Assembly (NCBI GenBank): GCA_977020255.1
Contig: CDROCS010005043.1
Coordinates: 1-64,000 of the forward strand
Reading direction: 5' to 3'
DNA from: Obrimoposthia wandeli
Lineage: Eukaryota
Length of the DNA: 64,000 nucleotides
Of the stretch, positions 22,900 to 55,275 are shown piece by piece. The notes beneath the pieces were generated by a model. It was not told where the DNA came from, did not search any database, and saw nothing but the letters and a program-made list of their open reading frames with translations. Made by a program: the position numbers and the translations under genes. Numbering within the stretch: position 1 is the first letter of the stretch; each line of letters opens with the position of its first letter.

Positions 22900-22933
22900 C
22901 TTTCGATTACTTTCAAACAATGATATTCGAAAG
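22900..22933. promoter_or_regulatory. AgaR-type boxes upstream of kdgK-eda
   Basis: CTTTC at 22900 and 22910 (10-bp period), inverted GAAAG at 22929. Confidence 0.6.
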
Positions 22934-23034: not shown

Positions 23035-23065
23035 AAAAAAGGGTAAGTAGCAACTTACCCTTTTT
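23035..23065 (-). terminator. Terminator after the lipoprotein lyase
   Basis: aaaaaagggtaagt-agca-acttacccttttt. Confidence 0.85.
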
Positions 23066-23084: not shown

Positions 23085-26000
23085 TTATTTTTGTTTTTTG
23101 AGCGTCACTTGCTGTGGTATACCAAAATAGCTTACAAATGTTAAAGAAGTATTATCACCAGATACACTCACTTTAACCTTATCGTTATCGGCAATCACAT
23201 CCCAGCGGCCTTGAATAACAACGGGAATATCCATTGGTATCGCCGCTGTATAACGCGTCATATTCAAGTCCGGAGTCACACCACTAATATTAATAGTGTC
23301 TTCACTCACTTGTCGTGTCATGACAATCGATGGTTTTGACATACTCACAACTAAACCATCGCTAAAGCTAGTGCCTGAAAAAGCACTATACGCGGTCGTT
23401 TTAGTTTCTATATCATAAACAACATGGGCATTATCGTCTTTTTGCAGTACTTGATAAGGCTTGTTACCCGCGGTAGTTTCAGCTGCAATACGTGCCATCG
23501 ATTCCGGCGTCGCATCAAGTATGGTTAAATACTCATACTCAGCATCATCAGGGGCATCCCCATGATTTAACCAAGCAACAGTAAAGTCGCCCTCTGTTGG
23601 TTTTTTACTTTGATTATGTGCTGATTTTTGATGCTGACGGCGTACTTCAAGTTCACCATCACTGACTAACACATAGCCATTACCTTGGCCGTCAATGAGC
23701 CAGTCACCTTTCGCTAATGTCGCAGTATAAGGAAAGGCGTCAATTTCTGTGCCATTCACCCATATACTATTCGACTTAGCTGTGTTCGCATGTTGGAACA
23801 ATGTCGTTTCAGTATTAAAACCATCACTACTGCTCTCGATATTGCTACCCAACATCACCAAACGGTTGTTCACCGAGAAGGTTGTTTTAAGCATTGAGAA
23901 ACCACTATCAAATTTTGCCGTAGATGGTGCTTGATGCTTAAACGCAAACATACCATATTGACCATCCAAACTTGATGCACCACTAAATGCTTGGTTACCA
24001 CGTAACATCAAGGTATGCGAATTTGGACTATCAAGTTGCTCTAGCGGTAAATGAATCGTCGTGGCTCCAGGGTTACGATTCCAATCCCAACCCGCTTCAA
24101 CAAAACCAACATCAGCTTGCTTTCCATAAGGCACAATCTGTACTGCACCGTGACTTTGATAGCGACCATAACGGTTATCACGATGATAGATCTCTGACGA
24201 CCAAACATTACTATTATACGCCTTCATCGTCACCATTTTGTCCTGATAACGGTGAATACCAAACGCACCACCATTAAACGCCCAATAACCTTGTGGGAGG
24301 CTTTCTGGTTCAACCCGTTCGCCAAATAATGCCACCGACTGGTCTGCCGTTTTACCTGTGATTTGTAAATATGCAGCAGCAAGTTCATGATCGACATCAC
24401 CATCACCAGACAAATCACCTGAAAGTGCTAACCAACGAAATGAATCTTGGAATGACGCTAATTTAGGTGGATTTAATGGGTGGCGTCCAGATAAGCCGAT
24501 ACCGACTTCAGGATTACTATATACCCAAGCTGATAACATCGCTTTTTTCAACGCTTTGCGACCCGTTTCACCGACTGCATACGGGGTACCACTGAGCATA
24601 TAAACCAGTTGAGCAGCATTTTTGAAAGCAGGAAATGAATAACCCGGATAGTTACCTTCATGACGCCACGCAGTACCATCTGGTCGTAAACCATCATAAC
24701 CACCAGGTGGTGTTTGCGACAATGCGATATCAATGTAATGACCAAATTTTTGCAATAAAGCAACTCGACGATTAATATCAGGTTCGAGCATTAACAATGC
24801 GAGATGTTGTCGTGACAAGGTATTGAAATAATCTAAGTTAGAACTTTCAAGTCCCGGTACCATATCAAAATTATCTTTAAATTCACGTGAATACCATAAT
24901 AAGGCATCATAAACAGGCTTACGTAAATCATGCTGAGTTAACACATCAGACATTAACATCGCTGAAATATACCACCAACGACCATAGTAACCCCAGTGGT
25001 GTGTCGTCACCAATGAACTGCCATCAACGAATCCCTGGTCTAGGATATGTTGTGTCATTAACACATACATATCTTCCAGCTCTTGTTTAATAATAGGGTC
25101 GTTCGTATTGTTCCATGCTCTACTGATATTTAGCAATAATGTAGAATATTTTCCTTGCGATACATAATCATCAATCAATTTTTTATCTGCGGGCTTTAAA
25201 TGCTCAGGCTGATAAATAACACGCTGTTTATTATTGATCAGATGACGGCCAGAAAGATTACCGTCACTGTCACGTTTGATTTCAAGAGCAGTGAATTCAG
25301 CGCGTAACGCATCTAAATCGGTATTTATTTTCAACCCTGTTTCACCCGCTATGTTAGTAAATACATTAACCAGTGAATTACGTACCAAGTTAGCAGTTGC
25401 AATTTCTTCAGCTGTTGCAACTGGAACAATTTTAGATAAGTTAAAATCAATTTCAGGGATTGTATAACGGGTTTTAACTTGATCATCAGACCATTGATAA
25501 CGAGAATCATCAACTGACAACATCACTCGATCTATATAAAAAGTACCATCTTCAGCATTGCGAGGGGCAGTAAAACGGATAGTATCCATATCACTGCGGA
25601 CACTACCAAAAATACTACTACTACCTAAGCCTTCGCCATCTTTATTGTCAGTCGGCGCGATACCTTCGACTTCTCGGCCTTGAATGTCATTCGCTAAAGA
25701 AACACCAACGGCTCGCCAACCGGTAAAATTCATATTGACACTAAAACCAGCATCAGCATCAGCGGTTCCAGTCAATCCACGACCTAAGTCAACCACAACA
25801 TCATCATCAACAGCGACTTCATTGTAAATCCAAAATGATAATACTTGCGTGCCTCGACGTCCCCAAGTCTTTTTCGCTTGGGCGTCAGTAATTAGCTTGA
25901 TCGGTTGATTGATAACAAAAGCACTGCTCTTTGTCCAATCCCATTGCAGAGAATGTCTGCCCATGATGTAACGCTTGTCACTCATCTGTAAAGTAGAGCC

Positions 26001-26186
26001 TTGTCGAGCAACAATATTATCAGGTACTTTGTCTTCTGACAGTGGAATAATGAGCGATTCCATGACAGGTGCGATAACGTTTTTTTCTTCCACCGCTTGC
26101 ACTTTATTCATATCAGCACAAGCTGTGAGCCCAAGTGCGGTAACGATACATAAAGATATCTTTTTTAATTTCATTGAAGTATGCAT
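23085..26186 (-). CDS. Chondroitin sulfate ABC lyase, cABC-I-like (PL8), lipoprotein
   Basis: Lipobox LTAC. THHWGY, GLRPDGTAWRHEGNYPGYSFPAFKNA (catalytic His/Tyr), SGRHP, WSSEIY.RDNRYGRYQSHG and GWDWNRNPG match Proteus-type cABC I motifs. Confidence 0.93.
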   Translation of the reverse strand: MHTSMKLKKISLCIVTALGLTACADMNKVQAVEEKNVIAPVMESLIIPLSEDKVPDNIVARQGSTLQMSDKRYIMGRHSLQWDWTKSSAFVINQPIKLITDAQAKKTWGRRGTQVLSFWIYNEVAVDDDVVVDLGRGLTGTADADAGFSVNMNFTGWRAVGVSLANDIQGREVEGIAPTDNKDGEGLGSSSIFGSVRSDMDTIRFTAPRNAEDGTFYIDRVMLSVDDSRYQWSDDQVKTRYTIPEIDFNLSKIVPVATAEEIATANLVRNSLVNVFTNIAGETGLKINTDLDALRAEFTALEIKRDSDGNLSGRHLINNKQRVIYQPEHLKPADKKLIDDYVSQGKYSTLLLNISRAWNNTNDPIIKQELEDMYVLMTQHILDQGFVDGSSLVTTHHWGYYGRWWYISAMLMSDVLTQHDLRKPVYDALLWYSREFKDNFDMVPGLESSNLDYFNTLSRQHLALLMLEPDINRRVALLQKFGHYIDIALSQTPPGGYDGLRPDGTAWRHEGNYPGYSFPAFKNAAQLVYMLSGTPYAVGETGRKALKKAMLSAWVYSNPEVGIGLSGRHPLNPPKLASFQDSFRWLALSGDLSGDGDVDHELAAAYLQITGKTADQSVALFGERVEPESLPQGYWAFNGGAFGIHRYQDKMVTMKAYNSNVWSSEIYHRDNRYGRYQSHGAVQIVPYGKQADVGFVEAGWDWNRNPGATTIHLPLEQLDSPNSHTLMLRGNQAFSGASSLDGQYGMFAFKHQAPSTAKFDSGFSMLKTTFSVNNRLVMLGSNIESSSDGFNTETTLFQHANTAKSNSIWVNGTEIDAFPYTATLAKGDWLIDGQGNGYVLVSDGELEVRRQHQKSAHNQSKKPTEGDFTVAWLNHGDAPDDAEYEYLTILDATPESMARIAAETTAGNKPYQVLQKDDNAHVVYDIETKTTAYSAFSGTSFSDGLVVSMSKPSIVMTRQVSEDTINISGVTPDLNMTRYTAAIPMDIPVVIQGRWDVIADNDKVKVSVSGDNTSLTFVSYFGIPQQVTLKKQK

Positions 26187-26212
26187 GAAATAACCTTACA
26201 ACTATGAGAGAA

Positions 26213-26234
26213 GCTTATGGGCTAACCCATAAGC
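26213..26234. other. Intercistronic 9-bp hairpin between autotransporter and lyase genes
   Basis: gcttatggg-ctaa-cccataagc, with only a weak U tail on the minus strand. Confidence 0.7.
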
Positions 26235-26241
26235 AGCTAAT

Positions 26242-28341
26242 TTAGAAACGTTTAGTAGTAGAAATACCAGCAACCAATTCAGTATATTTATCACGCTGGT
26301 AATAATTTAAACCAGCAGAAATACTAAAGTCATTTTCCATTTTAAAATGACCATTTAATTTAGCTTCTAATACATCACCGCCAACTTGATCACCAGAGAT
26401 CACAAAACGATCCCCAGAAGTATCCATCTTCAGAGTTGCACTTTCACGGAACACTTGATCTGAGTTTAAGTCTTTATAACCCATCACAGAGAATGATGGT
26501 GTAAATTGACTGTTTTCCATTTGAAAAGTGGTGAATATGTTGTAGCCAATGCCAACTTGTTTTGTACTGTAAGTTTGACGGTCATATCGTAAGCTAGCAG
26601 GAGAGCCTTGCTCTTCATAATCAGCACTGCGGATCCACTGATAATTATAAGCAATACGAGGTTCAAATTGCACAGATTCCAGATCAAATTTCATCCCTGC
26701 CATCAATTGATAGCCTAACTGAAATGAACTGTATTCAGCCTTTGCATGAGTATCGCCTTCATAACCTGAACGATTACCAATAACTCTTTCGCTGGTATTA
26801 TCATTACGACCAATATTAACATTGCCATCAATAAAGTAACGTTGATCAAACCAGCCGCTATAAATCATCCCTTGAAAACTATCAACTTCATTACTGCTGT
26901 TATTATTGTTAATATCAGCGCTCGAATTAGCATAAGCTAATGAAGCGCCAAACAAGCGTTGTTTATCAAAAACGCGGTCAAAACCAACGTTAATACCATA
27001 GGTACTCAAAGAATAACCGTTCACAGATGCTGAATCAGCTTGCCTACCGCTACTGTATAGCGCATGGCTCCAGATATTCCAGCCATTATTTGCAGTTCCC
27101 AACGCACTTTGATTACGTAAAATATTAGTACGCTCATCAACTTGACCACGCATTTTATCGACGAGCATAAGCGCAGCACGTAGTTCACTTCCTTCTGCAT
27201 CAGGTGTGATGTCATCTGCTAGTTGAGCTGTTTTTATCGCGTCATTACCCGACGATGTTAATAAAGCCAATAACTCAGCAGAAGCATCTGAACCGGTTTT
27301 ATTATGTGTATTAAGCGCATAATTCACCATGTGGTTAGCGGTCGCTACTTCATTGTTATTAGCACCACCAGCAGCAGCTAAACTAACAAATTGATCACCA
27401 CCTTGATAATTAACCGCGTAACGTACAATTAATTGATTACCCGACACACCGCCGTTAAGTGCTGGAGGTGTTTTCTCTAACCATGAACTCTGCACCGCTA
27501 ATAGTGGTGACATAGTCAGGTTTGATTTTGCCGCAGGTTTATCTCCCTCAATAACAATACCGGATCCGCCTTTTATGCCACCATCAGATTTCAGTAACAC
27601 AATATCTTTACCTAAAATATCATTTACACTGCTACCTTTATAAGAGAATTTCACCTTGTTATTAACGAACTCTGTTTTTCCTTCAACCTGTAAAATAGGT
27701 GCATCTAAATTACTCGTATCACCGACATTGAAGGTCAAGGTTGAACCCGCTTTATTACCAAAGTCCCCTCCCCAAACAATCGTATTAGCCTGACTAATAA
27801 TCGTTAAATTACCATAGTTATTAATGGTGCCAATACCGGTAATAGCGCCTCCATCAAAGATCGCATCTTTACCACTACTACCGTTATAGCCAAAATTTAT
27901 TTTATTACCTGTTACACCATTACCAATAATGCTGCCATCAATTGTGCCGTCAACATCGATACGTAATGAAGACGAGCTCGTACTAAAGTCTATTGCGTTG
28001 ACAAGGCCACTTACCTTCGAACCAGCCTTAACGTAAATCCCTAAATTAGGACTTGCTGGATCACTTTGAATAAAGCGACCATCAATTTTGATACCAGTCC
28101 CGTTACTGCTGGTAATATCATAGCCATCGGTATAAATATTACCTTTAAGTACACCATCACTCGCAACATATATTGCATTCGCATTATCAGCCGTCACTGC
28201 AGCATCATTTTTTAACCACTGACTTCCGAACTCGCCACCTTTATAACTTAGTCCTTCTGCATTAACTAAGCTGGGTGTAAATAAATAGCTCACTACTAGT
28301 AGAGACAATAAACTCGGTTTAAACTTTGGCTTAATATACAT
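26242..28341 (-). CDS. Type Va autotransporter with a Gly/Asn/Ser-rich beta-helical passenger of unknown function
   Basis: Signal peptide ending VNA, AIDA-like passenger, linker helix, and C-terminal barrel (WNIWSHALY...G.SL.TYG...GFD...FEPRIAY...), ending in Phe. Confidence 0.85.
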   Translation of the reverse strand: MYIKPKFKPSLLSLLVVSYLFTPSLVNAEGLSYKGGEFGSQWLKNDAAVTADNANAIYVASDGVLKGNIYTDGYDITSSNGTGIKIDGRFIQSDPASPNLGIYVKAGSKVSGLVNAIDFSTSSSSLRIDVDGTIDGSIIGNGVTGNKINFGYNGSSGKDAIFDGGAITGIGTINNYGNLTIISQANTIVWGGDFGNKAGSTLTFNVGDTSNLDAPILQVEGKTEFVNNKVKFSYKGSSVNDILGKDIVLLKSDGGIKGGSGIVIEGDKPAAKSNLTMSPLLAVQSSWLEKTPPALNGGVSGNQLIVRYAVNYQGGDQFVSLAAAGGANNNEVATANHMVNYALNTHNKTGSDASAELLALLTSSGNDAIKTAQLADDITPDAEGSELRAALMLVDKMRGQVDERTNILRNQSALGTANNGWNIWSHALYSSGRQADSASVNGYSLSTYGINVGFDRVFDKQRLFGASLAYANSSADINNNNSSNEVDSFQGMIYSGWFDQRYFIDGNVNIGRNDNTSERVIGNRSGYEGDTHAKAEYSSFQLGYQLMAGMKFDLESVQFEPRIAYNYQWIRSADYEEQGSPASLRYDRQTYSTKQVGIGYNIFTTFQMENSQFTPSFSVMGYKDLNSDQVFRESATLKMDTSGDRFVISGDQVGGDVLEAKLNGHFKMENDFSISAGLNYYQRDKYTELVAGISTTKRF

Positions 28342-28389
28342 AATTATCACTCTCAGAAATAAATTCAGATCAACTCACACAACACTGAC

Positions 28390-29322
28390 TTAAAATACCG
28401 TACTAACACCAAACGAAAGATACTTCACTTGGCCATCCGCTTTACCTAAATTAAAGCCATCTTGGTATTTGGTATCTTCTATATAGTACTCAGCGCTTAT
28501 TTTAAAACTATCCGTGATCGGATAAGAAAGCTGCAATGCATAACGATAAGTTTTACTGTTAGTATGATCCTCATCATGATAAGCACTGTCATACCAAGCG
28601 TAAGCCTTAGAATAACCGATAGGTAAGCGGAAATAAGGAGACACAGTTATGCCAAAAGGTGCTTTCCAATAATAATAAATGCGAGCCTGTTGGCCTGATT
28701 TATCATCTGATAAGCCCCAAGTATCACCTTTATCACTTTTTAGTCCGGAATTATAATACGTCATGGTGAGTCGAGATCCGTTAGCGAAATAATAACGAGG
28801 TCCTGATTCAAATTCCCAGCTTAAATAATCACTATCCATGGTTGGTTTAACATTATCCGCCGTATGACTGGCTTGGGTATTTAGGCCAAATTGTACTTCG
28901 CCCCACACGCCCCATTGATCATTAAATGAATATATATAAGCCGTCTCACTGCTATATAGATTAACGATCAAGCGAGAACCACTGTCATAAATCGTGCTAT
29001 CTTTTTGTAAATTGATACTCGGTTGGATCCAACCACCATCGAATCGAAAGCGGTACGACATTTCCATACTCGCTTGGGTATATCTTTGTTTGGAATCATG
29101 TTTACGATCACGATAACCTAAACTGTAATACCAATTTGAACCATCAGGGTTGATCGTCATATCCAGTCTTGGACCTGAATAGTTATAGTCTGAACCATAA
29201 TTCCCAGATTCTTGACTCAATGAGACATTAATTTTTGCAGCATTTGCCTGTAAAGGTAATAGCAGGCTTAATAATCCAACTGACAATAGACTGCCAGATA
29301 CTTTAACAAAATCAGATTTCAT
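28390..29322 (-). CDS. OmpG-like monomeric porin
   Basis: Signal peptide (ANA), Tyr/Trp-rich amphipathic strands; C-terminal SPYFR...YALQLSY...SAEY...KYLSFGVSTVF resembles the OmpG C-terminus. Confidence 0.65.
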   Translation of the reverse strand: MKSDFVKVSGSLLSVGLLSLLLPLQANAAKINVSLSQESGNYGSDYNYSGPRLDMTINPDGSNWYYSLGYRDRKHDSKQRYTQASMEMSYRFRFDGGWIQPSINLQKDSTIYDSGSRLIVNLYSSETAYIYSFNDQWGVWGEVQFGLNTQASHTADNVKPTMDSDYLSWEFESGPRYYFANGSRLTMTYYNSGLKSDKGDTWGLSDDKSGQQARIYYYWKAPFGITVSPYFRLPIGYSKAYAWYDSAYHDEDHTNSKTYRYALQLSYPITDSFKISAEYYIEDTKYQDGFNLGKADGQVKYLSFGVSTVF

Positions 29323-29663
29323 AACTTTTTATGACTCCCTAACGTTAAACTCAATGTGATTGTATATATTTTATAAACGCAATTTTAACGATTTCTCACT
29401 AAAAGTTTGTGATCAACCACCAATTATCGAAAGCAAACAAAAGAAACAAAGTAAGTAAAAGAAAAAGTTCAAAAAATATTAACTAATATTTAAATAAGAT
29501 CTAAAACATCATAAACTACTGGTTAATAAAGAATAAGTCGATTTAAATCGCTAGATTAGTAAGCATTGTTAAATTTACTGATCAACACCATGTCACAAAA
29601 CAGTTAATAAAAAGTATAAATACATTGAAATACATTTCATTAAAGCTTTAAAATCTTCACATA

Positions 29664-29698
29664 GAAAGACAAAGAAAGAAAAGGAAAGCAAAGGAAAG
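29664..29698. promoter_or_regulatory. Four AgaR-type GAAAG boxes upstream of the Ig-like lipoprotein
   Basis: GAAAG at 29664, 29674, 29684 and 29694, an exact 10-bp period. Confidence 0.7.
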
Positions 29699-29772
29699 AT
29701 AGGTTTGATGTATTAGTTCTACTAACCGTCAAATATAATTCTCTTATAATGAAACTACCCTAGGCAGGAATC

Positions 29773-32265
29773 ATGAAAAAAAGCTTTAAGTATTGCGCCA
29801 TTGCAATCGCCATTAGCAGTGTTCTTACAGGCTGTAATGACGAAGACACCACGAATTCAAATAACAATAACGGAAATCCTTACGTTGTACCGATCGCTTC
29901 TGATATAAGTATCTCTGGTGATAGTTACGTGAATTCAACGCTAACAGGTGAATATAAATTTATTGATCCGAACTATTCACCACGTGCAGAAGGCGCAAGT
30001 GCTTATAGCTGGAAAGTAGATGATCTTGATGGCGATAGAACTAATGATGTTGCCATTACGGGTGCAAATGAGCGCACCTTATTACTAGCTGATAATCAAC
30101 TAGACCAGTCTGTATATTTGTGTGTCACACCTGAAGCAACAGGTAACACAAATACGACTGGTGAAACGAAATGTTCAACGGCGAAATTGGTTCAATCAGC
30201 AAACGGCTCTAAACCCTCAGCAACAAGTGCTGTTATCGATAACACAACTCCGACAGTTGGCGACACCTTGACGGGTAGTTATGACTATGCCGATGCTGAT
30301 AACGATCTAGAAAGCGGTTCAACTTTCCGCTGGAAAGCCAGCGCGAATGACATTACGGGTGCGACGAGCATTACTCACACACTGACTAATCAGCAAGAAG
30401 GGAAAGTCATTGAGTTTTGTGTCACACCAACGTCTGCCAACCCAGATAGCATTTCTAATTACCCAACAATTGGCGATGAAGTGTGCTCTGCTGTTGATAC
30501 AGATGCAGTACAGGAAAAAGTAGGTGATGCGCCGACAGCAAATAATATTGTGATCACTGGTGATCACACGGTAGGCTCAACACTGACTCCAACCTACGCT
30601 TTCAGTGATGCTGATAATGATGCACAAGGCAGCAGTACCTTTAGCTGGAAACGCGGTTCAATCGAAGTAGCAACAACATTAGCTTATGAATTAGTAAGCG
30701 CGGATGTTGGTGCGAATATTACCTTTACTGTGACGCCCGTTTCAGCGACAGGGCTACCAACAAATGGTACACCTGTAGAATCTGGCGCGATAACCGACGT
30801 CGCGCAACCTTCAGGTCCAACACCGACAATCTCTTTAAAGGCAGTAGATAAAGCCGGTAAAGCTTACCCTGAAATTAACGATACATTGACCGGTGGTTAC
30901 ACTTACACCCCGTCAATAACCAACTCAGCAGATGAATCTACCGCGGTATGGAAAGCAGCAGGTGTACCGATCACCGATGTCACTTGTACTACCGGTTCCG
31001 ATTGTTCTTTAACGCTCACTGACACTTATTACAATAAAGACTTAACGTATTGTGTGACGCCGAAAGCAGTTGATAGCTCTGCAGGTACTGAGAAATGTAG
31101 CGCCATCGAAAAAGTCTATGGTGTAAAACTCTCTGGCACACTCGAGTTTGGTAAAGAGTTAAAACTAGACATATCGGGTTATAACAATCCAAAGGTTGAA
31201 TGGAAAGTCGACGTTAGTGATATTGAAGGCCCAACCAGTGATGATAATCGCACGCCGCGTAATCCAGTAAAAACCGGTGAAGCAGCAAAAACGTTCTTAA
31301 TTGGCGCTGAAGTATTGAAACAAATCATCAATACAGATCAAGCTAGTCTACTTGACTTAGATGCTACTATTGGTAACAAAAACGGGATTGTTGATGATGC
31401 CGATTGGGCACAAGCCTCTCTTTTAGGTAATGTCACTATGGACAGTGGTTCTGTTGATGCCAACGCCATTAATGCCGCGAACTACGTAGGTAAAGAAGTC
31501 GAAGTTACTGTCACATTTACTGAATCAAACGTAGATCCAGTTACCTTGATCGCGTCAAAAACAACTGAAGTACTCGGTGGCGTTTATTACGATACCAGTG
31601 ATGCAACCAAGCGTGGTATTGAGCCTGTAAGAGAATTAGTTTTCGGTACTCTGGTTTATCACCGTCCATTGACTGTGGCTGAAGCAACTCATAAAGCGGC
31701 TGTTGGTTTTGGTGCTAACGTAGCTTATCCGCGTTATTCAAAACCATCAGCAGGAATCAACTGGGGACTATATCGCGCAATAAAAGATGCATCAGATACT
31801 GCTGATAAGTACAACTCAGACTTCCCTGCGGTTGAATCTTGCTTGAATCTATATGATGAAGCGGCTAAGGATGTTTGGCATTTACCTGCAAGCCGTTATG
31901 ATTCAGCTTACACAGCAAACGGTTTTGCAGCCCAAGGCAATAAGCCACCAATGGAAACTGCCGATGAAAAGTATTCATTAATCCAATTGGCAAGCGCGAT
32001 CAACAAAAGTGATAACACAGTCAGAAATGGCTTACTCGGCACTTATATCGACCGTACAACGCCGAACGAGAAACTTAATTATACCATTTCACCGACGACT
32101 GGGTGGCTATTAAATGGCAATACTGGACTAACTGCTTTTTGGAGCGCTACGAAACCAAATTCAAGTTCATCGACAGCGAACTCGGTATTATTCACAGAAT
32201 CAGGTGGTTCAGGTAACAACGGTTTGACCAATGGCCGCTTTGTTTCATGTGTTAGAGCAAAATAA
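29773..32265 (+). CDS. Lipoprotein with four tandem Ig-like repeats and a C-terminal invasin/DUF823-like (C-type-lectin-like) domain
   Basis: Lipobox LTGC. Four ~95-aa repeats (VG.TLTG.Y...D...S...W...V/CTP...G...CS). The tip has YHRPLTVAE...W...C...WHLP...TGW...FWS...FVSCVR. Confidence 0.75.
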   Translation: MKKSFKYCAIAIAISSVLTGCNDEDTTNSNNNNGNPYVVPIASDISISGDSYVNSTLTGEYKFIDPNYSPRAEGASAYSWKVDDLDGDRTNDVAITGANERTLLLADNQLDQSVYLCVTPEATGNTNTTGETKCSTAKLVQSANGSKPSATSAVIDNTTPTVGDTLTGSYDYADADNDLESGSTFRWKASANDITGATSITHTLTNQQEGKVIEFCVTPTSANPDSISNYPTIGDEVCSAVDTDAVQEKVGDAPTANNIVITGDHTVGSTLTPTYAFSDADNDAQGSSTFSWKRGSIEVATTLAYELVSADVGANITFTVTPVSATGLPTNGTPVESGAITDVAQPSGPTPTISLKAVDKAGKAYPEINDTLTGGYTYTPSITNSADESTAVWKAAGVPITDVTCTTGSDCSLTLTDTYYNKDLTYCVTPKAVDSSAGTEKCSAIEKVYGVKLSGTLEFGKELKLDISGYNNPKVEWKVDVSDIEGPTSDDNRTPRNPVKTGEAAKTFLIGAEVLKQIINTDQASLLDLDATIGNKNGIVDDADWAQASLLGNVTMDSGSVDANAINAANYVGKEVEVTVTFTESNVDPVTLIASKTTEVLGGVYYDTSDATKRGIEPVRELVFGTLVYHRPLTVAEATHKAAVGFGANVAYPRYSKPSAGINWGLYRAIKDASDTADKYNSDFPAVESCLNLYDEAAKDVWHLPASRYDSAYTANGFAAQGNKPPMETADEKYSLIQLASAINKSDNTVRNGLLGTYIDRTTPNEKLNYTISPTTGWLLNGNTGLTAFWSATKPNSSSSTANSVLFTESGGSGNNGLTNGRFVSCVRAK

Positions 32266-32700: not shown

Positions 32701-33825
32701 ATGAAACACATGAAAAAAGTAAAATCAATATTAGGACTTTCTCTTCTATATTTACCGCTTAGTGTGAGCGCTTCAGTCTGTGGTGTAGTAGGTGGGGGTT
32801 CAGTCCCTCTCACTATAGATCATGACACCGCAAAAACAGTGTCAATTACCACTTACACTGAATTACAAAGTGCGCTGTTAGCAGGGGAAAAACATATCTA
32901 CATTCCCGGCAACATCACAATTACGATCCCCAATAGCAAGAATGCGTTAATCATCCCTGAAGGGACAACTTTATTCAGTGACCGTGGAACGAATAATAGT
33001 CCAGGAGCTTTATTGCAAACCAACTACCTCAATGAGGCAGACAATTATTATGCCGTGATATCCATCGCGAGTAATGTCGAATTAAGTGGCTTAAGGATCC
33101 AAGGCCCAAATAGTAATATTGATACAGACAATCTGACCATTGGCATGCAGTCTGTCGCTGGCAGTAAAAATATCGCTATTACTAATAGTGAACTCTATGC
33201 TTGGCCTGGCGCTGCGTTATCACTAAAAACATCGTTGAATGCAGAAATTAGCTACAGCTATATTCATCACAACAGAAAATCATCACGTGGTTATGGTGTT
33301 GTCGTACAAAACGGTAGTACATCAGCAGCAATATACTGCAATGTATTTGATGCCAACCGTCATAGTATTGCTGGTTCAGGGCAGTCTGGAGAATCTTATA
33401 CCGCGTCTTACAACCTGGTACTGCCAGAAGGTAAAGGCCATGCGTTTGATATGCATGAAAGCTCCGACCCAGCAAGTAAGATAGGTGGTAGTTATGTCAA
33501 TATAAGTAACAACTGGTTAGATTTTGGCGGTACAAAGTGGGGGCATTATCCGTCGATAAATGTGCGTGGAATACCAGAAGTTGGCGCGGCAACGATTCAG
33601 AAAAATCATTTCACATCAGCAATACAATATCTTGATGGCGGAGCCAGAACGAAACGCCCAATTGAAGGCGTATCTGGCGCGATAGCTGCAGATAATACAT
33701 TAAAAAGTAACAATGAATTTGATGTTAATTTTAACTATGCCAATGATGGTCAACAGTGTTCTTTCAGTTATGGTTCGATGACACAGCAAGTTAATTGTAC
33801 AGCTGTAAGTTCAGTATTACCTTAA
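32701..33825 (+). CDS. Secreted right-handed beta-helix (pectin-lyase-fold) protein, function unknown
   Basis: Signal peptide. Repeats with Asn/Ile ladders (VELSGLRIQG, IAITNSEL, ISYSYIHHN, IYCNVF..NRHSIAG, HAFDMH, VNISNNW). Confidence 0.7.
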   Translation: MKHMKKVKSILGLSLLYLPLSVSASVCGVVGGGSVPLTIDHDTAKTVSITTYTELQSALLAGEKHIYIPGNITITIPNSKNALIIPEGTTLFSDRGTNNSPGALLQTNYLNEADNYYAVISIASNVELSGLRIQGPNSNIDTDNLTIGMQSVAGSKNIAITNSELYAWPGAALSLKTSLNAEISYSYIHHNRKSSRGYGVVVQNGSTSAAIYCNVFDANRHSIAGSGQSGESYTASYNLVLPEGKGHAFDMHESSDPASKIGGSYVNISNNWLDFGGTKWGHYPSINVRGIPEVGAATIQKNHFTSAIQYLDGGARTKRPIEGVSGAIAADNTLKSNNEFDVNFNYANDGQQCSFSYGSMTQQVNCTAVSSVLP

Positions 33826-36142: not shown

Positions 36143-37897
36143 CTATTGCAACCACGTCGGCAAATACCCTAACCTGCGCTCGACTTGTGCTTGATATAAC
36201 GACTGCGGATACACAGATTTACCCAATGACTCAACATATGCCTGCGGTACGGTTAGCAACGGCTCTGGATACTTGGCATAACCGTTGTCATTCACGTATT
36301 GCACATAACCTTGGGTATCACTTACCGTGATTGGCGCACCGTGAAAGCCAATCAAATACGGCATAATGATCCGTCCATAAGCATTGTCCTTACGCATTAA
36401 CTCATAACCCTGTATTGGCTTATCAATATTGTTATAATTCCAATATATCAACCCTTTCAGATGGTTAGGTTGATTCATTATTGCCGCGCCCCAACGACCG
36501 TAGATCCAGCCCCCAGTGACATTATCAAACAAGTTCAAACGTGGTTGTGCACCATGTAAATCAGATGACGCATTGGCATTAAATTGGGTTTTAAAGTGCA
36601 CATTCGATGACGACATATGCGAGAAACCCGGTGCATGCCAAGCGTTAGAATTATCTGTAACATTCATCGACAAATTATTAAATGAGAACTGCATCTGTAA
36701 TGATAAATGCCCAGCATTACCATTGAGGTTCATATTTTTCACTGTCGAATTTGCCGTGATTGTGAGCGACATGCCGGCATTGAAATCGACTAATTCAAGA
36801 TCTTGCGCCCAGCTATTGGCAACACGTCGGAACTGGACAAGACTCCAAGCGCTGTCATGGATAAGGCCATCCGTCGTTAATTTATGATGTTTAAATGTAT
36901 CTTGCCAATTACCGCGAATGGTTAACTGTTCTAATCCCACGTTTTCCAGCATCGCGACTTTCGTTACCTGCCAATTATCTTCCGGGTCAATATCCACTTG
37001 GATTGGCGCATAAAACTTAATTTGATCACCATTAATGGCTTTGACCTGATGCAATTCTTGTAAGGCCAAACCTTGTCGCAATTTCGTCCAACGGCTTTCT
37101 AGCTTGTACGGTGAAATTTGCGCCTCAATATAATCGGGACGTTTAACTGATGCAGCTAATGCAACCCAATCACCAACTTTAAATTCCGCACCAATAATGC
37201 GCAGCTTATTCAGCTGGATAGTGTTACTGCTACCAGCAACATGGGTAGAACTGACCTTTGCAACAACGGCTTGTTCAGGTTGGCCTTTATTCGGTGAAGT
37301 GAAATTAATGATGCGTGGTGTTGACCACATTTTTTTCGGGTCTTTAGGCAATAACGGCATGCGCATAAACAGTTCAGTTTTACCCTGACCCGCGCCACGT
37401 AACACGATATTACTTTGCGTAATATTAATCAGTTTCTGCGCGGCAACATCGCTACTTTCATTAATCAATAATTGTCCTTCAGGGAAAGCTACGATAGCCG
37501 CACGTTTCTCCGCATCGTTGCCTTTTCGCCCATCTTCGACGTAACCTTCAGCTTGTTTGATTGCCTCGATAATTGCGCTTTTATCACTGTGTTCATCGTT
37601 AGCAATAGCGCCATAATCGGTGACGTTAAACACTTTATAAGTGGCACCATTCGGGGCGATATCACCACTCGGTAACGGCTGTTCGCCTCGTTGATAACCG
37701 ACGTAAGCAAAATTATTAAGTACCTCATCACCAGTAAACTTGCTTGCTGGGTCATACAGATCATTGCCCGCACTGCGTGAGGCTTCAAATTGTTGCCAAT
37801 AACGCGAAGTATTGACTTGCTCTGCAGCAAGTTCTCCACTCATCACCATCACCAGCGGCGCTAAACCCAGCAACAAGTTAATATATTTATATCTCAT
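36143..37897 (-). CDS. Secreted beta-helix protein, DUF4955-like, putative polysaccharide-active enzyme
   Basis: Signal peptide; FAYVGY..GE..LP, VFNVTDYGAIAND..SD..AI (pectate_lyase_3-type start), LRGAG, and C-terminal H..QPR.NLFD..GG...PNH...L.YWN. Confidence 0.7.
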   Translation of the reverse strand: MRYKYINLLLGLAPLVMVMSGELAAEQVNTSRYWQQFEASRSAGNDLYDPASKFTGDEVLNNFAYVGYQRGEQPLPSGDIAPNGATYKVFNVTDYGAIANDEHSDKSAIIEAIKQAEGYVEDGRKGNDAEKRAAIVAFPEGQLLINESSDVAAQKLINITQSNIVLRGAGQGKTELFMRMPLLPKDPKKMWSTPRIINFTSPNKGQPEQAVVAKVSSTHVAGSSNTIQLNKLRIIGAEFKVGDWVALAASVKRPDYIEAQISPYKLESRWTKLRQGLALQELHQVKAINGDQIKFYAPIQVDIDPEDNWQVTKVAMLENVGLEQLTIRGNWQDTFKHHKLTTDGLIHDSAWSLVQFRRVANSWAQDLELVDFNAGMSLTITANSTVKNMNLNGNAGHLSLQMQFSFNNLSMNVTDNSNAWHAPGFSHMSSSNVHFKTQFNANASSDLHGAQPRLNLFDNVTGGWIYGRWGAAIMNQPNHLKGLIYWNYNNIDKPIQGYELMRKDNAYGRIIMPYLIGFHGAPITVSDTQGYVQYVNDNGYAKYPEPLLTVPQAYVESLGKSVYPQSLYQAQVERRLGYLPTWLQ

Positions 37898-44698: not shown

Positions 44699-45862
44699 TT
44701 ATTTGTTAAATTTATGAATCGTCACACCTTGAACCACTCGGTTTACTTCACCGGTTGGGCAAGGGTTGTCAGGTGTATTGCCTAACTCTACTGACAGATG
44801 GAATGCATAAATTTGTGCCACTAAGATGTAAGAAAAAAGTAGTCCAGCATCTGTTGCATCTTGCATATCATCAGCAAGCCAGTAATCACCGTTACTCACT
44901 TGATTATCAAGTTGAGCTGTAATCGCAATTACTTTATTAGCAATGCCATCACGGCGTAATTCAGCTAATAAATCTAAATCATATTTACGGGTTTGTGGGT
45001 TATTTGAGATATAAACAAAAATTAATGTTTTATCATCAACAATCGATTTCGGTCCGTGGCGGAAGCCAAGCGGAGAATCGAAACTAATCACAACCTTACC
45101 GGCAGTCAGTTCAAGTAATTTTAATGCAGACTCTTCAGCCACACCTTTAAAACCACCACTCCCGAGGTAAATAACTTTGTTTACTTCAGTGTTGTCTATT
45201 GTACCGATAAATTTATTAATTTCTTTGACCTGCGCCTCAGAATGCTTACAAATACTTTCGATATCTTTCAACTTGAACTCGCCGTCACCTAATATCGAAA
45301 AAGCAGAGAGCATCATTGAAGAGAAACTAGAGGTCATTGCGAACGATTTATCATTGGTTTGCGCTGGCATTAATACCGCTAATGATTTGCTGTCAGTTTT
45401 ACTTGCTACGTATAACTGACCTTCGTTATTACAAGTCAGTACTAAGTGGTAACAATTACTCAAGCATTCATTGGCTAGGTTTACCGCTTCTACACTTTCA
45501 GGGCTGTTACCTGAACGTGCAAACGATACTAATAGTGTCGGGATATCTTCAGCAAAGTACTGATAAGGGTTTGATACAATATCAGTCGTTGATACTGCTT
45601 CAACACGGCGTTGAGTTTGCTGTGTTAAAATAGGAGCAAGTGAACGACCAACAAATGCAGATGTACCAGCACCAGTTAATACAATACGTAAATCACGATG
45701 TGCTAGAATCGGCGTCATAAAATCATTAATTAACGCGCTATTTCGTTCTAAAATTGCTTTTGTTTCACGCCAGCATTCAGGTTGTTGTTCGATCTCTTTC
45801 GCTGTCCAGAAGCCTTTTAATTGTTCTAATTCTGTCGCGCTATAACCCAAGTAATTACTCAT
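44699..45862 (-). CDS. agaS: Galactosamine-6-phosphate deaminase/isomerase (SIS domains)
   Basis: WTAKEI.QQP, TGAGTSAF, SFARSGNSPES, FAMTSSF, GFRHGPKS, PCPTGEVNRVVQGV. Confidence 0.95.
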   Translation of the reverse strand: MSNYLGYSATELEQLKGFWTAKEIEQQPECWRETKAILERNSALINDFMTPILAHRDLRIVLTGAGTSAFVGRSLAPILTQQTQRRVEAVSTTDIVSNPYQYFAEDIPTLLVSFARSGNSPESVEAVNLANECLSNCYHLVLTCNNEGQLYVASKTDSKSLAVLMPAQTNDKSFAMTSSFSSMMLSAFSILGDGEFKLKDIESICKHSEAQVKEINKFIGTIDNTEVNKVIYLGSGGFKGVAEESALKLLELTAGKVVISFDSPLGFRHGPKSIVDDKTLIFVYISNNPQTRKYDLDLLAELRRDGIANKVIAITAQLDNQVSNGDYWLADDMQDATDAGLLFSYILVAQIYAFHLSVELGNTPDNPCPTGEVNRVVQGVTIHKFNK

Positions 45863-47209: not shown

Positions 47210-47986
47210 TCAATCTTCCTTTTCGACAATAATCACTTCAACTTTCATATCTCGAAGACCTTCTACGTACTCGTCCGGGATACCTGAATCAGTAACTAAT
47301 ATGTCAATTTTACCGAACTCGCGAATCATATGACAGCTACGTTTTCCAAACTTACTGGAATCGGCAACTGCAATCACTTGTTCAGAAATATCACACATCA
47401 AACGATTAAGACTTGCTTCTTGTTCGTTATGAGTAGTGATACCGGCACGCAAATCAAAACCATCGACCCCTAAAAACAACTTATCGAAACAGTAATTTTT
47501 AAGACCTTGTTCTGCTTGTGAACCACTAAAAGAAAGTGCATTCTTACGGAGAATACCCCCGGGCATCAACACTTCAATTCCAGGTGCTGATGCTAACTCC
47601 ATCGCTACATCCAGACCATTGGTCATAACCACTGCACTGCCAATTGATTTTAGGCTAGAGGCAATCTCTTTTGCAGTAGTTCCCGAATCTAGAATAACAG
47701 TGTCACCACTATTGATAAGTTTTGCTGCAGCTTGACCAATCCGAGTTTTAATGTCGGGGTTATGCCGACGTTTCTCATGAACAGTCAATTCTGCAACAAC
47801 CCCAATATTTGGAATCGCAGCACCATGTGATCGAACCACATAACCGCTACTTTCCAGAAAACTAAGGTCACTTCGAATCGTGACACTAGAGACATTAAAT
47901 AGTGCAGCAAGGTCTTCAACGCGGGCTTTACCGTCTCGGTTAACCACATTGATGATTTCCATGCGCCTTTCGACAGCACTTTTCAT
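47210..47986 (-). CDS. agaR: DeoR-family repressor AgaR
   Basis: ERR..II...G.A.V..LA..F.VS.VTIR.DL HTH, DSGTT, VMTNG, DSSKFG; directly upstream of kbaZ. Confidence 0.93.
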   Translation of the reverse strand: MKSAVERRMEIINVVNRDGKARVEDLAALFNVSSVTIRSDLSFLESSGYVVRSHGAAIPNIGVVAELTVHEKRRHNPDIKTRIGQAAAKLINSGDTVILDSGTTAKEIASSLKSIGSAVVMTNGLDVAMELASAPGIEVLMPGGILRKNALSFSGSQAEQGLKNYCFDKLFLGVDGFDLRAGITTHNEQEASLNRLMCDISEQVIAVADSSKFGKRSCHMIREFGKIDILVTDSGIPDEYVEGLRDMKVEVIIVEKED

Positions 47987-48089: not shown

Positions 48090-48141
48090 CTTTGAAGTCT
48101 TTCACAAACTTTCAATTTCTTTCAATTCATTCCGAACTTTA
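48090..48141. promoter_or_regulatory. AgaR operator array upstream of agaR-kbaZ
   Basis: CTTTC at 48099, 48109 and 48119 (10-bp period) flanked by CTTTG 48090 and CTTTA 48137; further boxes at 48025 and GAAAG at 48356, 48382, 48417. Confidence 0.7.
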
Positions 48142-55044: not shown

Positions 55045-55275
55045 GAAAGCATTCGAAGAACCACTTGATAAAATGAACACAAATAAATCAACTCAATTTT
55101 ATTTATTATTTTTATCCAAGATATCATTAACACAGCTTAACAACGCGATTTGTTAACGCTACGCTTATCACAAAATAAATATAAAAATAAAAAATGGCAT
55201 ATCCGAAAATAACTAATTAACTTACAATGAAAATAATCGAAACAAACATAACAATAAAAACCTTCATTAACTTTC
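55045..55275. promoter_or_regulatory. Paired AgaR-type boxes in the MCP/lyase divergent region, plus possible CRP site at 55015-55030
   Basis: GAAAG/GAAGA 55045/55055, GAAAA/GAAAC 55229/55239, CCTTC/CTTTC 55261/55271; TGTGA-N6-TCAAT at 55015. Confidence 0.5.

Follow-up and report, generated by a model that had tools for sequence, protein, structure and literature searches.

Three adjacent genes that encode an OmpG-type porin, a classical autotransporter and a chondroitin ABC lyase-like lipoprotein probably constitute one co-inherited, and probably co-transcribed, outer-membrane module for chondroitin sulfate foraging. They occupy positions 23085-29322 of the window, by which is meant the whole stretch of 64,000 nucleotides analysed (positions 1 to 64,000 of contig CDROCS010005043.1, assembly GCA_977020255.1, Obrimoposthia wandeli). 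The assignment of capture and import to the lyase and the porin is well supported by inference. The role given to the autotransporter, a tether for polymer or tissue, is a best guess and the weakest step of the model. Each part comes from a known family; the constant trio with its fixed autotransporter is the new element relative to the literature found.

The three open reading frames (ORFs) are arranged head to tail on the minus strand, with the porin at 28390-29322, the autotransporter at 26242-28350 and the lyase at 23085-26186. Gaps of 39 bp (porin/autotransporter) and 55 bp (autotransporter/lyase) separate them, exactly the spacing given by an earlier reading of the letters alone, referred to here as the sequence-only reading. 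If translation of the autotransporter begins at the ATG at 28341, the start favoured by its homologues, the first gap widens to 48 bp. Between the genes, no terminator-like sites were found. Just after the lyase stop codon, folding places an intrinsic terminator hairpin, a 13-bp stem followed by a T run, at 23036-23065 on the minus strand (dG −16.3 kcal/mol, z −5.17, matched by 0 of 200 shuffles), in agreement with the single terminator near 23035 that had been proposed. A consensus terminator scan overlooked this hairpin, probably because its A/T arms absorb the T run. On the other side of the trio, a sequence scan delimits a divergent control region between the porin gene and a gene for an immunoglobulin (Ig)-repeat lipoprotein (29323-29772), where a sigma-70-like promoter is predicted for the porin, with its −35 element at 29388 and its −10 element ending at 29359. 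On this layout the trio is probably co-transcribed as one outer-membrane module. The location that the sequence-only reading assigned to all three products is likewise upheld, by the signal peptide, 14 strands and C-terminal Phe of the porin, the PF03797 domain of the autotransporter and the lipobox of the lyase.

The proposal was said from the outset to depend on whether the three genes are conserved together across genomes, and they are. Besides the window, there are 15 informative contexts from six families, and all 15 show the trio with its order and orientation unchanged. A porin-based search returned 10 genome loci with enough sequence, and all 10 carry porin, autotransporter and lyase alike; they belong to Moritella, two Photobacterium species, Vibrio, Psychromonas, Yersinia ruckeri, Y. 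pestis, Y. similis and Salmonella enterica subsp. arizonae and diarizonae. A search with the autotransporter passenger added the trio in Moellerella wisconsensis and on a Vibrio plasmid. Three more porin homologues also sit in trios, in Photobacterium phosphoreum, on a contig of Vibrio alfacsensis that also has integrase and ParB genes, and on a metagenome contig where the called neighbours of the trio are unrelated genes. The flanking genes often differ between genomes, and in Salmonella no other gene of the window was matched within 10 kb of the trio.

The distribution of the lyases points the same way. Those linked to the trio form one clade with a Shimodaira-Hasegawa-like approximate likelihood ratio (SH-aLRT) support of 98 in a quick tree. 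In a 401-genome sample of the order, a lyase of the same Pfam family occurs in 10 genomes, and the passenger is present only in the 3 that have the best-scoring lyases. The remaining 7 lyase-bearing genomes lack the passenger, and the 5 of these that were tested also lack the porin; the sample gave no new passenger-bearing genome. Some lyases outside the trio are lipoproteins too. In Salmonella and Yersinia pairs, each of the three genes, and likewise the passenger, has a ratio of nonsynonymous to synonymous substitution rates (dN/dS) of 0.05-0.20, which is the mark of purifying selection. The 15 contexts, the single lyase clade, a passenger that tracks the best lyases and these dN/dS values together argue that the three genes are co-inherited and maintained.

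The module also appears in mobile surroundings. On the Vibrio sp. B1REV9 plasmid and in V. alfacsensis (loci L014, L015 and L032), the trio and the Ig-repeat lipoprotein gene lie beside genes for a phage-type integrase, ParB and ParA, with Rep3 at one locus. These plasmid and integrase neighbours indicate that the module is horizontally mobile.

The lyase (23085-26186, minus strand) is a PL8 chondroitin ABC endolyase-like enzyme of 1033 residues and a predicted outer-membrane lipoprotein. All four of its Pfam domains, Lyase_N, Lyase_catalyt, Lyase_8 and Lyase_8_C, score above threshold, and residues 41-1029 match chondroitin ABC lyase I of Proteus vulgaris (ChABC I, 1HN0) with 1194 bits. Catalytic residues H509, Y516, R568 and E665 (24192-24662, minus strand) each align with the same amino acid in 1HN0 and do not vary among 13 trio lyases. 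We take them to be the counterparts of the catalytic His501, Tyr508, Arg560 and Glu653 of ChABC I. At the N-terminus, the translation reads a lipobox L-T-A-C at residues 20-23 (26118-26129, minus strand). Its Cys23 is followed by Ala-Asp, and the Ala, rather than Asp, at position +2 predicts delivery of the lyase to the outer membrane. Of the 16 trio lyases, 12 have a clear lipobox. The enzyme would be attached to the outer membrane and face outward.

Two relatives of this gene have unusual arrangements. In Moellerella wisconsensis (L012/L013:12176-18340), an ordinary signal peptide replaces the lipobox of the trio lyase, and a second lyase of ~1013 residues follows in tandem, a pair that resembles the chondroitinase ABC I and II of Proteus vulgaris. 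In Photobacterium phosphoreum, the porin gene is immediately preceded by an ORF of 446 residues (L031:6427-7767) whose sole domain is Lyase_8; this ORF may be a lyase fragment.

The first gene of the trio (28390-29322, minus strand) encodes a 310-residue protein with a signal peptide of about residues 1-28 and a C-terminal Phe. Profile, AlphaFold2 (AF2) and Foldseek results support its assignment as an OmpG-type 14-stranded, monomeric-type outer-membrane channel, as the sequence-only reading had it. Its family is small (18 clusters at 90% identity), and a profile built from 19 homologues matches E. coli OmpG with an E-value of 1.4e-4 over the C-terminal half. The AF2 model (mean predicted local distance difference test score, pLDDT, 85) shows 14 strands and no plug or periplasmic domain; the bare barrel begins straight after the signal peptide. 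Its top Foldseek match is OmpG 2iwv (E 4e-13, TMt 0.80, with OmpG chains at 0.78-0.80), and CymA comes next. The Pfam family PF09381 (Porin_OmpG) is absent from the window porin even at E<=10. Homologue P0018 gives a weak PF09381 match, and some family members are named OmpG family porin in their source records.

The pore was also expected to contain a ladder of basic residues. Among the residues assigned to the lumen by strand phase, 15 are Lys or Arg and 9 are Asp or Glu, and seven of the lumen-side arginines are invariant (R52, R71, R91, R93, R214, R232 and R260). The invariant arginines would suit an anionic cargo. Inward passage of such a cargo, and selectivity for it, are presumed.

Between porin and lyase lies the gene for the autotransporter (26242-28350, minus strand; 702 residues), for which the ATG at 28341 is probably the correct start codon. 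It has a signal-like N-terminus, a C-terminal Phe and a PF03797 match at residues 426-681 (E 4.4e-46). By its sequence and its AF2 model (pLDDT 86.7), it is a predicted classical (type Va) autotransporter, with a C-terminal PF03797 translocator preceded by a linker helix. A linker helix (388-416) and a 12-stranded translocator barrel (424-701), recognised by Pfam, AF2 and fold match, are encoded at 26245-27189 on the minus strand. In whole-model fold searches, which are dominated by barrel matches, VIA-align gives EstA a Z-score of 35.5 and NalP one of 30.6. A helical pedestal occupies residues 318-381 of the model (27208-27399, minus strand), between the beta-helix and the barrel; its helices, at 318-327, 332-352, 355-365 and 371-381, align with part of full-length EstA.

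The passenger, which would be exported to the cell surface, is an acidic right-handed beta-helix of ~280 residues (residues ~32-313; 27412-28257, minus strand) according to the AF2 secondary structure. Its family is limited to 20 clusters, and these come from the taxa that also supply the porin family. No relatives were found in Pfam (E<=10), NCBIfam or the PDB by single sequence or by profile, in keeping with the earlier remark that it bears no protease, esterase or toxin motif. A feature search of the ESM Atlas yielded nothing more specific than generic beta-helix clusters of the BigA/pertactin type. The best fold matches of the passenger are the binding region of the L. reuteri SRRP (Z 15.2), Pet, pertactin, the PL-like Cthe_2159, an alginate lyase and UpaB (Z 12.8), so that beta-helices that bind polysaccharides or resemble polysaccharide lyases, together with UpaB, are the nearest in fold. 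In structure the modelled passenger is a generic beta-helix, and likeness of fold shows no function.

By strand phase, the conserved pairs K88/D90, R130/D132 and K150/N152 form a stripe on successive rungs of the helix, and this stripe is the best candidate for a ligand site on the modelled passenger. A second conserved segment, S281-P-L-L ... S-W-L ... N-G-G, covers residues 281-301 and overlaps stretches where the model pLDDT falls below 50 (269-279 and 288-299). In most homologues, the passenger opens with a Cys-x(6-9)-Cys loop and ~30-40 further residues, a portion absent from the window copy and two other homologues.

A working scheme for the module can be built from these features. A polymer of tens of kilodaltons is too large for an OmpG-sized pore and must first be cut by an endolyase on the outside of the cell. 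The surface-held PL8 lyase would cut chondroitin sulfate into unsaturated sulfated di- and tetrasaccharides, and these anionic products would reach the periplasm through the OmpG-type channel with its conserved lumen arginines. A second lyase and sulfatases would finish the fragments in the periplasm. The unsaturated disaccharide would then be imported by a phosphotransferase system (PTS) and split by a cytoplasmic GH88 enzyme. Beside porin and lyase, the beta-helix of the autotransporter would keep polymer, proteoglycan or host matrix near the lyase, with the conserved Lys/Arg-Asp/Asn stripe as the contact site and perhaps with the help of Ca2+. The tether role was chosen because of the constant linkage, the purifying selection, the fold class and the precedent of the UpaB groove discussed below. 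The sequence-only reading had distributed the roles in much the same way. A ChABC I homologue with the catalytic tetrad and a lipobox, and an OmpG-type channel with an Arg-rich lumen, favour that distribution; the lipid anchor it assumed is absent from 3 of the 16 lyases.

Several points weigh against this scheme. The lipobox is missing from the trio lyases of Moellerella (L013), the metagenome contig (L033) and Y. pestis (L006), and it is ambiguous in that of Photobacterium phosphoreum (L031), so the anchor is usual and not defining. In Y. pestis NCTC5923, the lipobox Cys of the lyase (L006:13322-16435) is changed to Tyr (LGTAAY), where Y. similis retains LGTAAC; apart from this change, all three ORFs of the NCTC5923 trio are full length. 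Even where the lipobox is intact, the surface exposure of an outer-membrane lipoprotein is not readable from its sequence. The porin lumen was assigned by strand phase and not from coordinates. The passenger is acidic, with an isoelectric point (pI) of 4.05-5.2 in all 20 homologues, which is unusual for the binding of a polyanion without Ca2+. In Vibrio nomapromontoriensis (L004:10963-12294), the autotransporter is reduced to 443 residues; it keeps the pedestal, linker and barrel, which are 47% identical to those of the window copy, and has lost the beta-helix. Co-conservation inside one clade partly reflects common descent. Finally, the literature set, which is incomplete, contained no paper on the gene trio or on an autotransporter fixed in a polysaccharide utilisation unit, and nothing relevant on the Yersinia Yap names or on a Salmonella arizonae chondroitinase.

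The acidic passenger and the non-lipidated lyases also bear on a different role for the autotransporter, that of a partner of the lyase (a surface scaffold, retention device or exposure helper) and not a binder of substrate. Linkage to the autotransporter is strict even where the lyase has no lipobox, as in Moellerella, the metagenome contig and Yersinia pestis, and these non-lipidated lyases lend the scaffold some weight. The conserved segment at residues 281-301 falls in an unplaced stretch of the model, as docking motifs often do, and the passenger is acidic. Nothing indicates contact between the two proteins, however, and the pI of the lyase ranges from 5 to 8 across species, so there is no constant charge complementarity. 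Other lipoprotein lyases of the same superfamily, moreover, occur in genomes that have neither the autotransporter nor the porin. On balance, a lyase partner is an unlikely explanation.

Less probable again is a passenger that is itself an enzyme. Displayed by type V secretion, such a beta-helix would work as a polysaccharide lyase, a hydrolase or an esterase on linkages beyond the reach of PL8, for instance in dermatan or hyaluronan segments or in the linkage region. The fold class is common to PL1, PL6, alginate lyases and the PL-like Cthe_2159, and the invariant K88/D90, R130/D132 and K150/N152, together with D121, stand on consecutive rungs of a passenger that is under purifying selection. 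Such a rung stripe of Lys/Arg with Asp/Asn recalls the sites of Ca2+-dependent beta-helix lyases. Yet ladders of this type are also structural, and most autotransporter beta-helices are non-catalytic stalks. Pfam, NCBIfam and the PDB gave no sequence likeness to families of the CAZy type, and the window already has other candidate beta-helix enzymes, at 36143-37897 and 32701-33825. A catalytic passenger is given little credence.

The 14-stranded barrel, in turn, could serve not as an importer but as a translocon or anchor, working like Slam to deliver the lipoprotein lyase to the cell surface. It always adjoins a usually lipidated enzyme that has to reach a polymer outside the cell, and the Neisseria Slam barrel is also 14-stranded. 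Sequence and fold nevertheless place the window barrel with OmpG and CymA, and no DUF560 match was found at E<=10. Slam joins its DUF560 barrel to an N-terminal periplasmic tetratricopeptide repeat domain, whereas the window barrel has no periplasmic domain. The barrel also persists where the lyase lacks a lipobox, and other lipoprotein lyases exist without it. This idea is largely rejected.

It is equally far-fetched that the three genes are uncoupled neighbours by descent in one mobile island, with the autotransporter a hitch-hiking general adhesin: the single lyase clade does imply that the arrangement arose once, and two Vibrio contexts do contain plasmid partition and integrase genes, but order and orientation are kept down to 39-45% porin identity while the flanks all change, every member of the small passenger (20 clusters) and porin (18) families with a readable context is in a trio, all three genes are under purifying selection, and the loci share phased GAAAG boxes upstream.

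The foraging module, our preferred reading, is embedded in a suitable setting. Although deposited in a eukaryotic assembly, the window is bacterial and Moritella-like, with proteins 63-98% identical to those of a Moritella metagenome-assembled genome (MAG) and a shared gene order. This gene content inside an assembly of 1.35 Gb and 6912 contigs suggests that the contig is probably an associate (symbiont) or contaminant of the eukaryotic host. As judged from its predicted genes, much of the window is a locus for the utilisation of chondroitin sulfate and GalNAc. It encodes a second PL8 lyase, this one with an ordinary signal peptide, two Sec- and Tat-exported sulfatases (one with a twin-arginine signal), an anaerobic sulfatase-maturing enzyme and a methyl-accepting chemotaxis protein (MCP). 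To complete the pathway there are an Aga-type PTS with AgaS, KbaZ, NagA and the DeoR-type repressor AgaR, a GH88 enzyme that lacks a signal peptide and is cytoplasmic, and KduI, KduD, KdgK and Eda.

Divergent to the trio, at 29773-32265 on the plus strand, lies the gene for the Ig-repeat lipoprotein (lipobox LTGC). It adjoins the trio in marine genomes (L001-L004, L014 and L032), and no match to it was found within 10 kb of the trio in the enteric loci L005-L009. Compared with the Moritella MAG (L001), the porin and autotransporter are 68-69% identical, a range that becomes 63-69% when the Ig-repeat lipoprotein is included; the trio lyase is 84% identical, and the cytoplasmic GH88, KduI, KduD and Eda are 95-98% identical. 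The lower identity of the outer-membrane genes relative to the cytoplasmic enzymes fits either surface exposure or recombinational replacement.

Phased GAAAG boxes may tie the trio to the rest of the locus. The window has 13 pairs of GAAAG at 10-bp spacing where 3.7 would be expected, an enrichment that 0 of 100 shuffles reach. They occur at 22900-22914 before kdgK, 29429-29443, 29664-29698, 45245-45269, 48099-48123 before agaR, and 55261-55275 near the second lyase. The sequence-only reading had singled out a degenerate array from 29429. A degenerate match is indeed present at 29429-29470, although it amounts to one weak GAAAG-N5-GAAAG match with one mismatch; the perfect array, four boxes in 10-bp phase, is instead at 29664-29698, nearer the divergent gene at 29773. 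Similar pairs precede the porin gene, at distances of up to 600 bp, in 10 of 12 related loci. These boxes are likely, though still putative, operators of the DeoR-type AgaR encoded at 47210-47986. The E. coli AgaR operator contains CTTTC repeats, and the putative link of the boxes to AgaR depends on this.

A module of this kind would matter for several reasons. Far less has been described in Proteobacteria than in Bacteroides about how a large, sulfated host polymer such as chondroitin sulfate is brought across the outer membrane, and the trio would offer a testable answer, a surface lyase combined with a dedicated OmpG-type channel adapted to anions. If the scheme is true, autotransporters, usually regarded as adhesins, proteases or toxins, would gain a possible role in nutrient capture. 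The module is carried by pathogens and commensals of fish and other animals (Yersinia ruckeri, the Y. pestis/similis group, Salmonella arizonae/diarizonae, Photobacterium, Vibrio and Moritella) and might play a part in how these bacteria colonise cartilage, skin and mucus. Its lyases are, moreover, natural relatives, with a lipid anchor, of the Proteus chondroitinase ABC I, an enzyme of solved structure (1HN0).

A comparison of the parts with known systems separates what is shared from what is new. The closest counterpart of the lyase is chondroitin ABC lyase I of Proteus vulgaris (1HN0, 7EIP), which has the same three-domain architecture over the full length and identical catalytic positions. 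The Proteus enzyme carries an ordinary signal peptide. The window lyase differs by its extra N-terminal lipobox and ~17-residue linker, with the alignment beginning only at residue 41, and has a pI of 5.3. Moellerella, a relative of Proteus, carries the porin and the autotransporter beside its lyase.

For the porin, the nearest known channels are E. coli OmpG and Klebsiella CymA (TMt 0.80 and ~0.65), which share its 14 strands and also belong to a sugar-utilisation context. Identity is only ~17%, however; the window porin has its own family set of invariant lumen arginines, and its substrate would be sulfated uronate oligosaccharides. KdgM, which the window porin matches only with an E-value of 0.019, belongs to a different barrel family. 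Porins of the KdgM/NanC and ChiP/LamB types follow the logic proposed for the trio, a channel dedicated to the oligosaccharide products of an extracellular depolymerase: pectate lyases are paired with KdgM, and PulA, a lipoprotein enzyme, with LamB. Unlike the trio, none of the KdgM/NanC and ChiP/LamB systems is known to have an autotransporter as a constant third gene.

The autotransporter is best compared with UpaB of uropathogenic E. coli, whose beta-helix groove binds glycosaminoglycans and resembles chondroitinase B (PMC6488583). Both are type Va proteins, and UpaB (PDB 6BEA) matches the passenger with a Z-score of 12.8, which is no better than that of other beta-helices. No sequence similarity between the two was detected, and UpaB is a host adhesin with no known link to a lyase or porin. 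The statement of the sequence-only reading that no characterised autotransporter is dedicated to polysaccharide uptake therefore needs qualification, since a glycosaminoglycan groove was already known in UpaB, though outside any uptake system.

In overall design, the trio resembles the Sus loci of Bacteroides, where a lipid-anchored surface endo-enzyme, glycan-binding proteins and an outer-membrane importer are likewise encoded together. The tools differ. In place of the TonB-dependent SusC, the trio has a passive OmpG-type channel, and in place of SusD and the surface glycan-binding proteins (SGBPs) it has an autotransporter, joined by the Ig-repeat lipoprotein in marine genomes. Tentatively, and as a broader claim that we hold to be possible and still doubtful, a classical autotransporter may here be an obligate part of a proteobacterial glycan-foraging machine, serving as a capture arm or a docking platform for the lyase beside an OmpG-type importer. 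Such a machine would be a type V counterpart of the Bacteroides Sus system, spread among animal-associated Gammaproteobacteria that include Yersinia and Salmonella arizonae.

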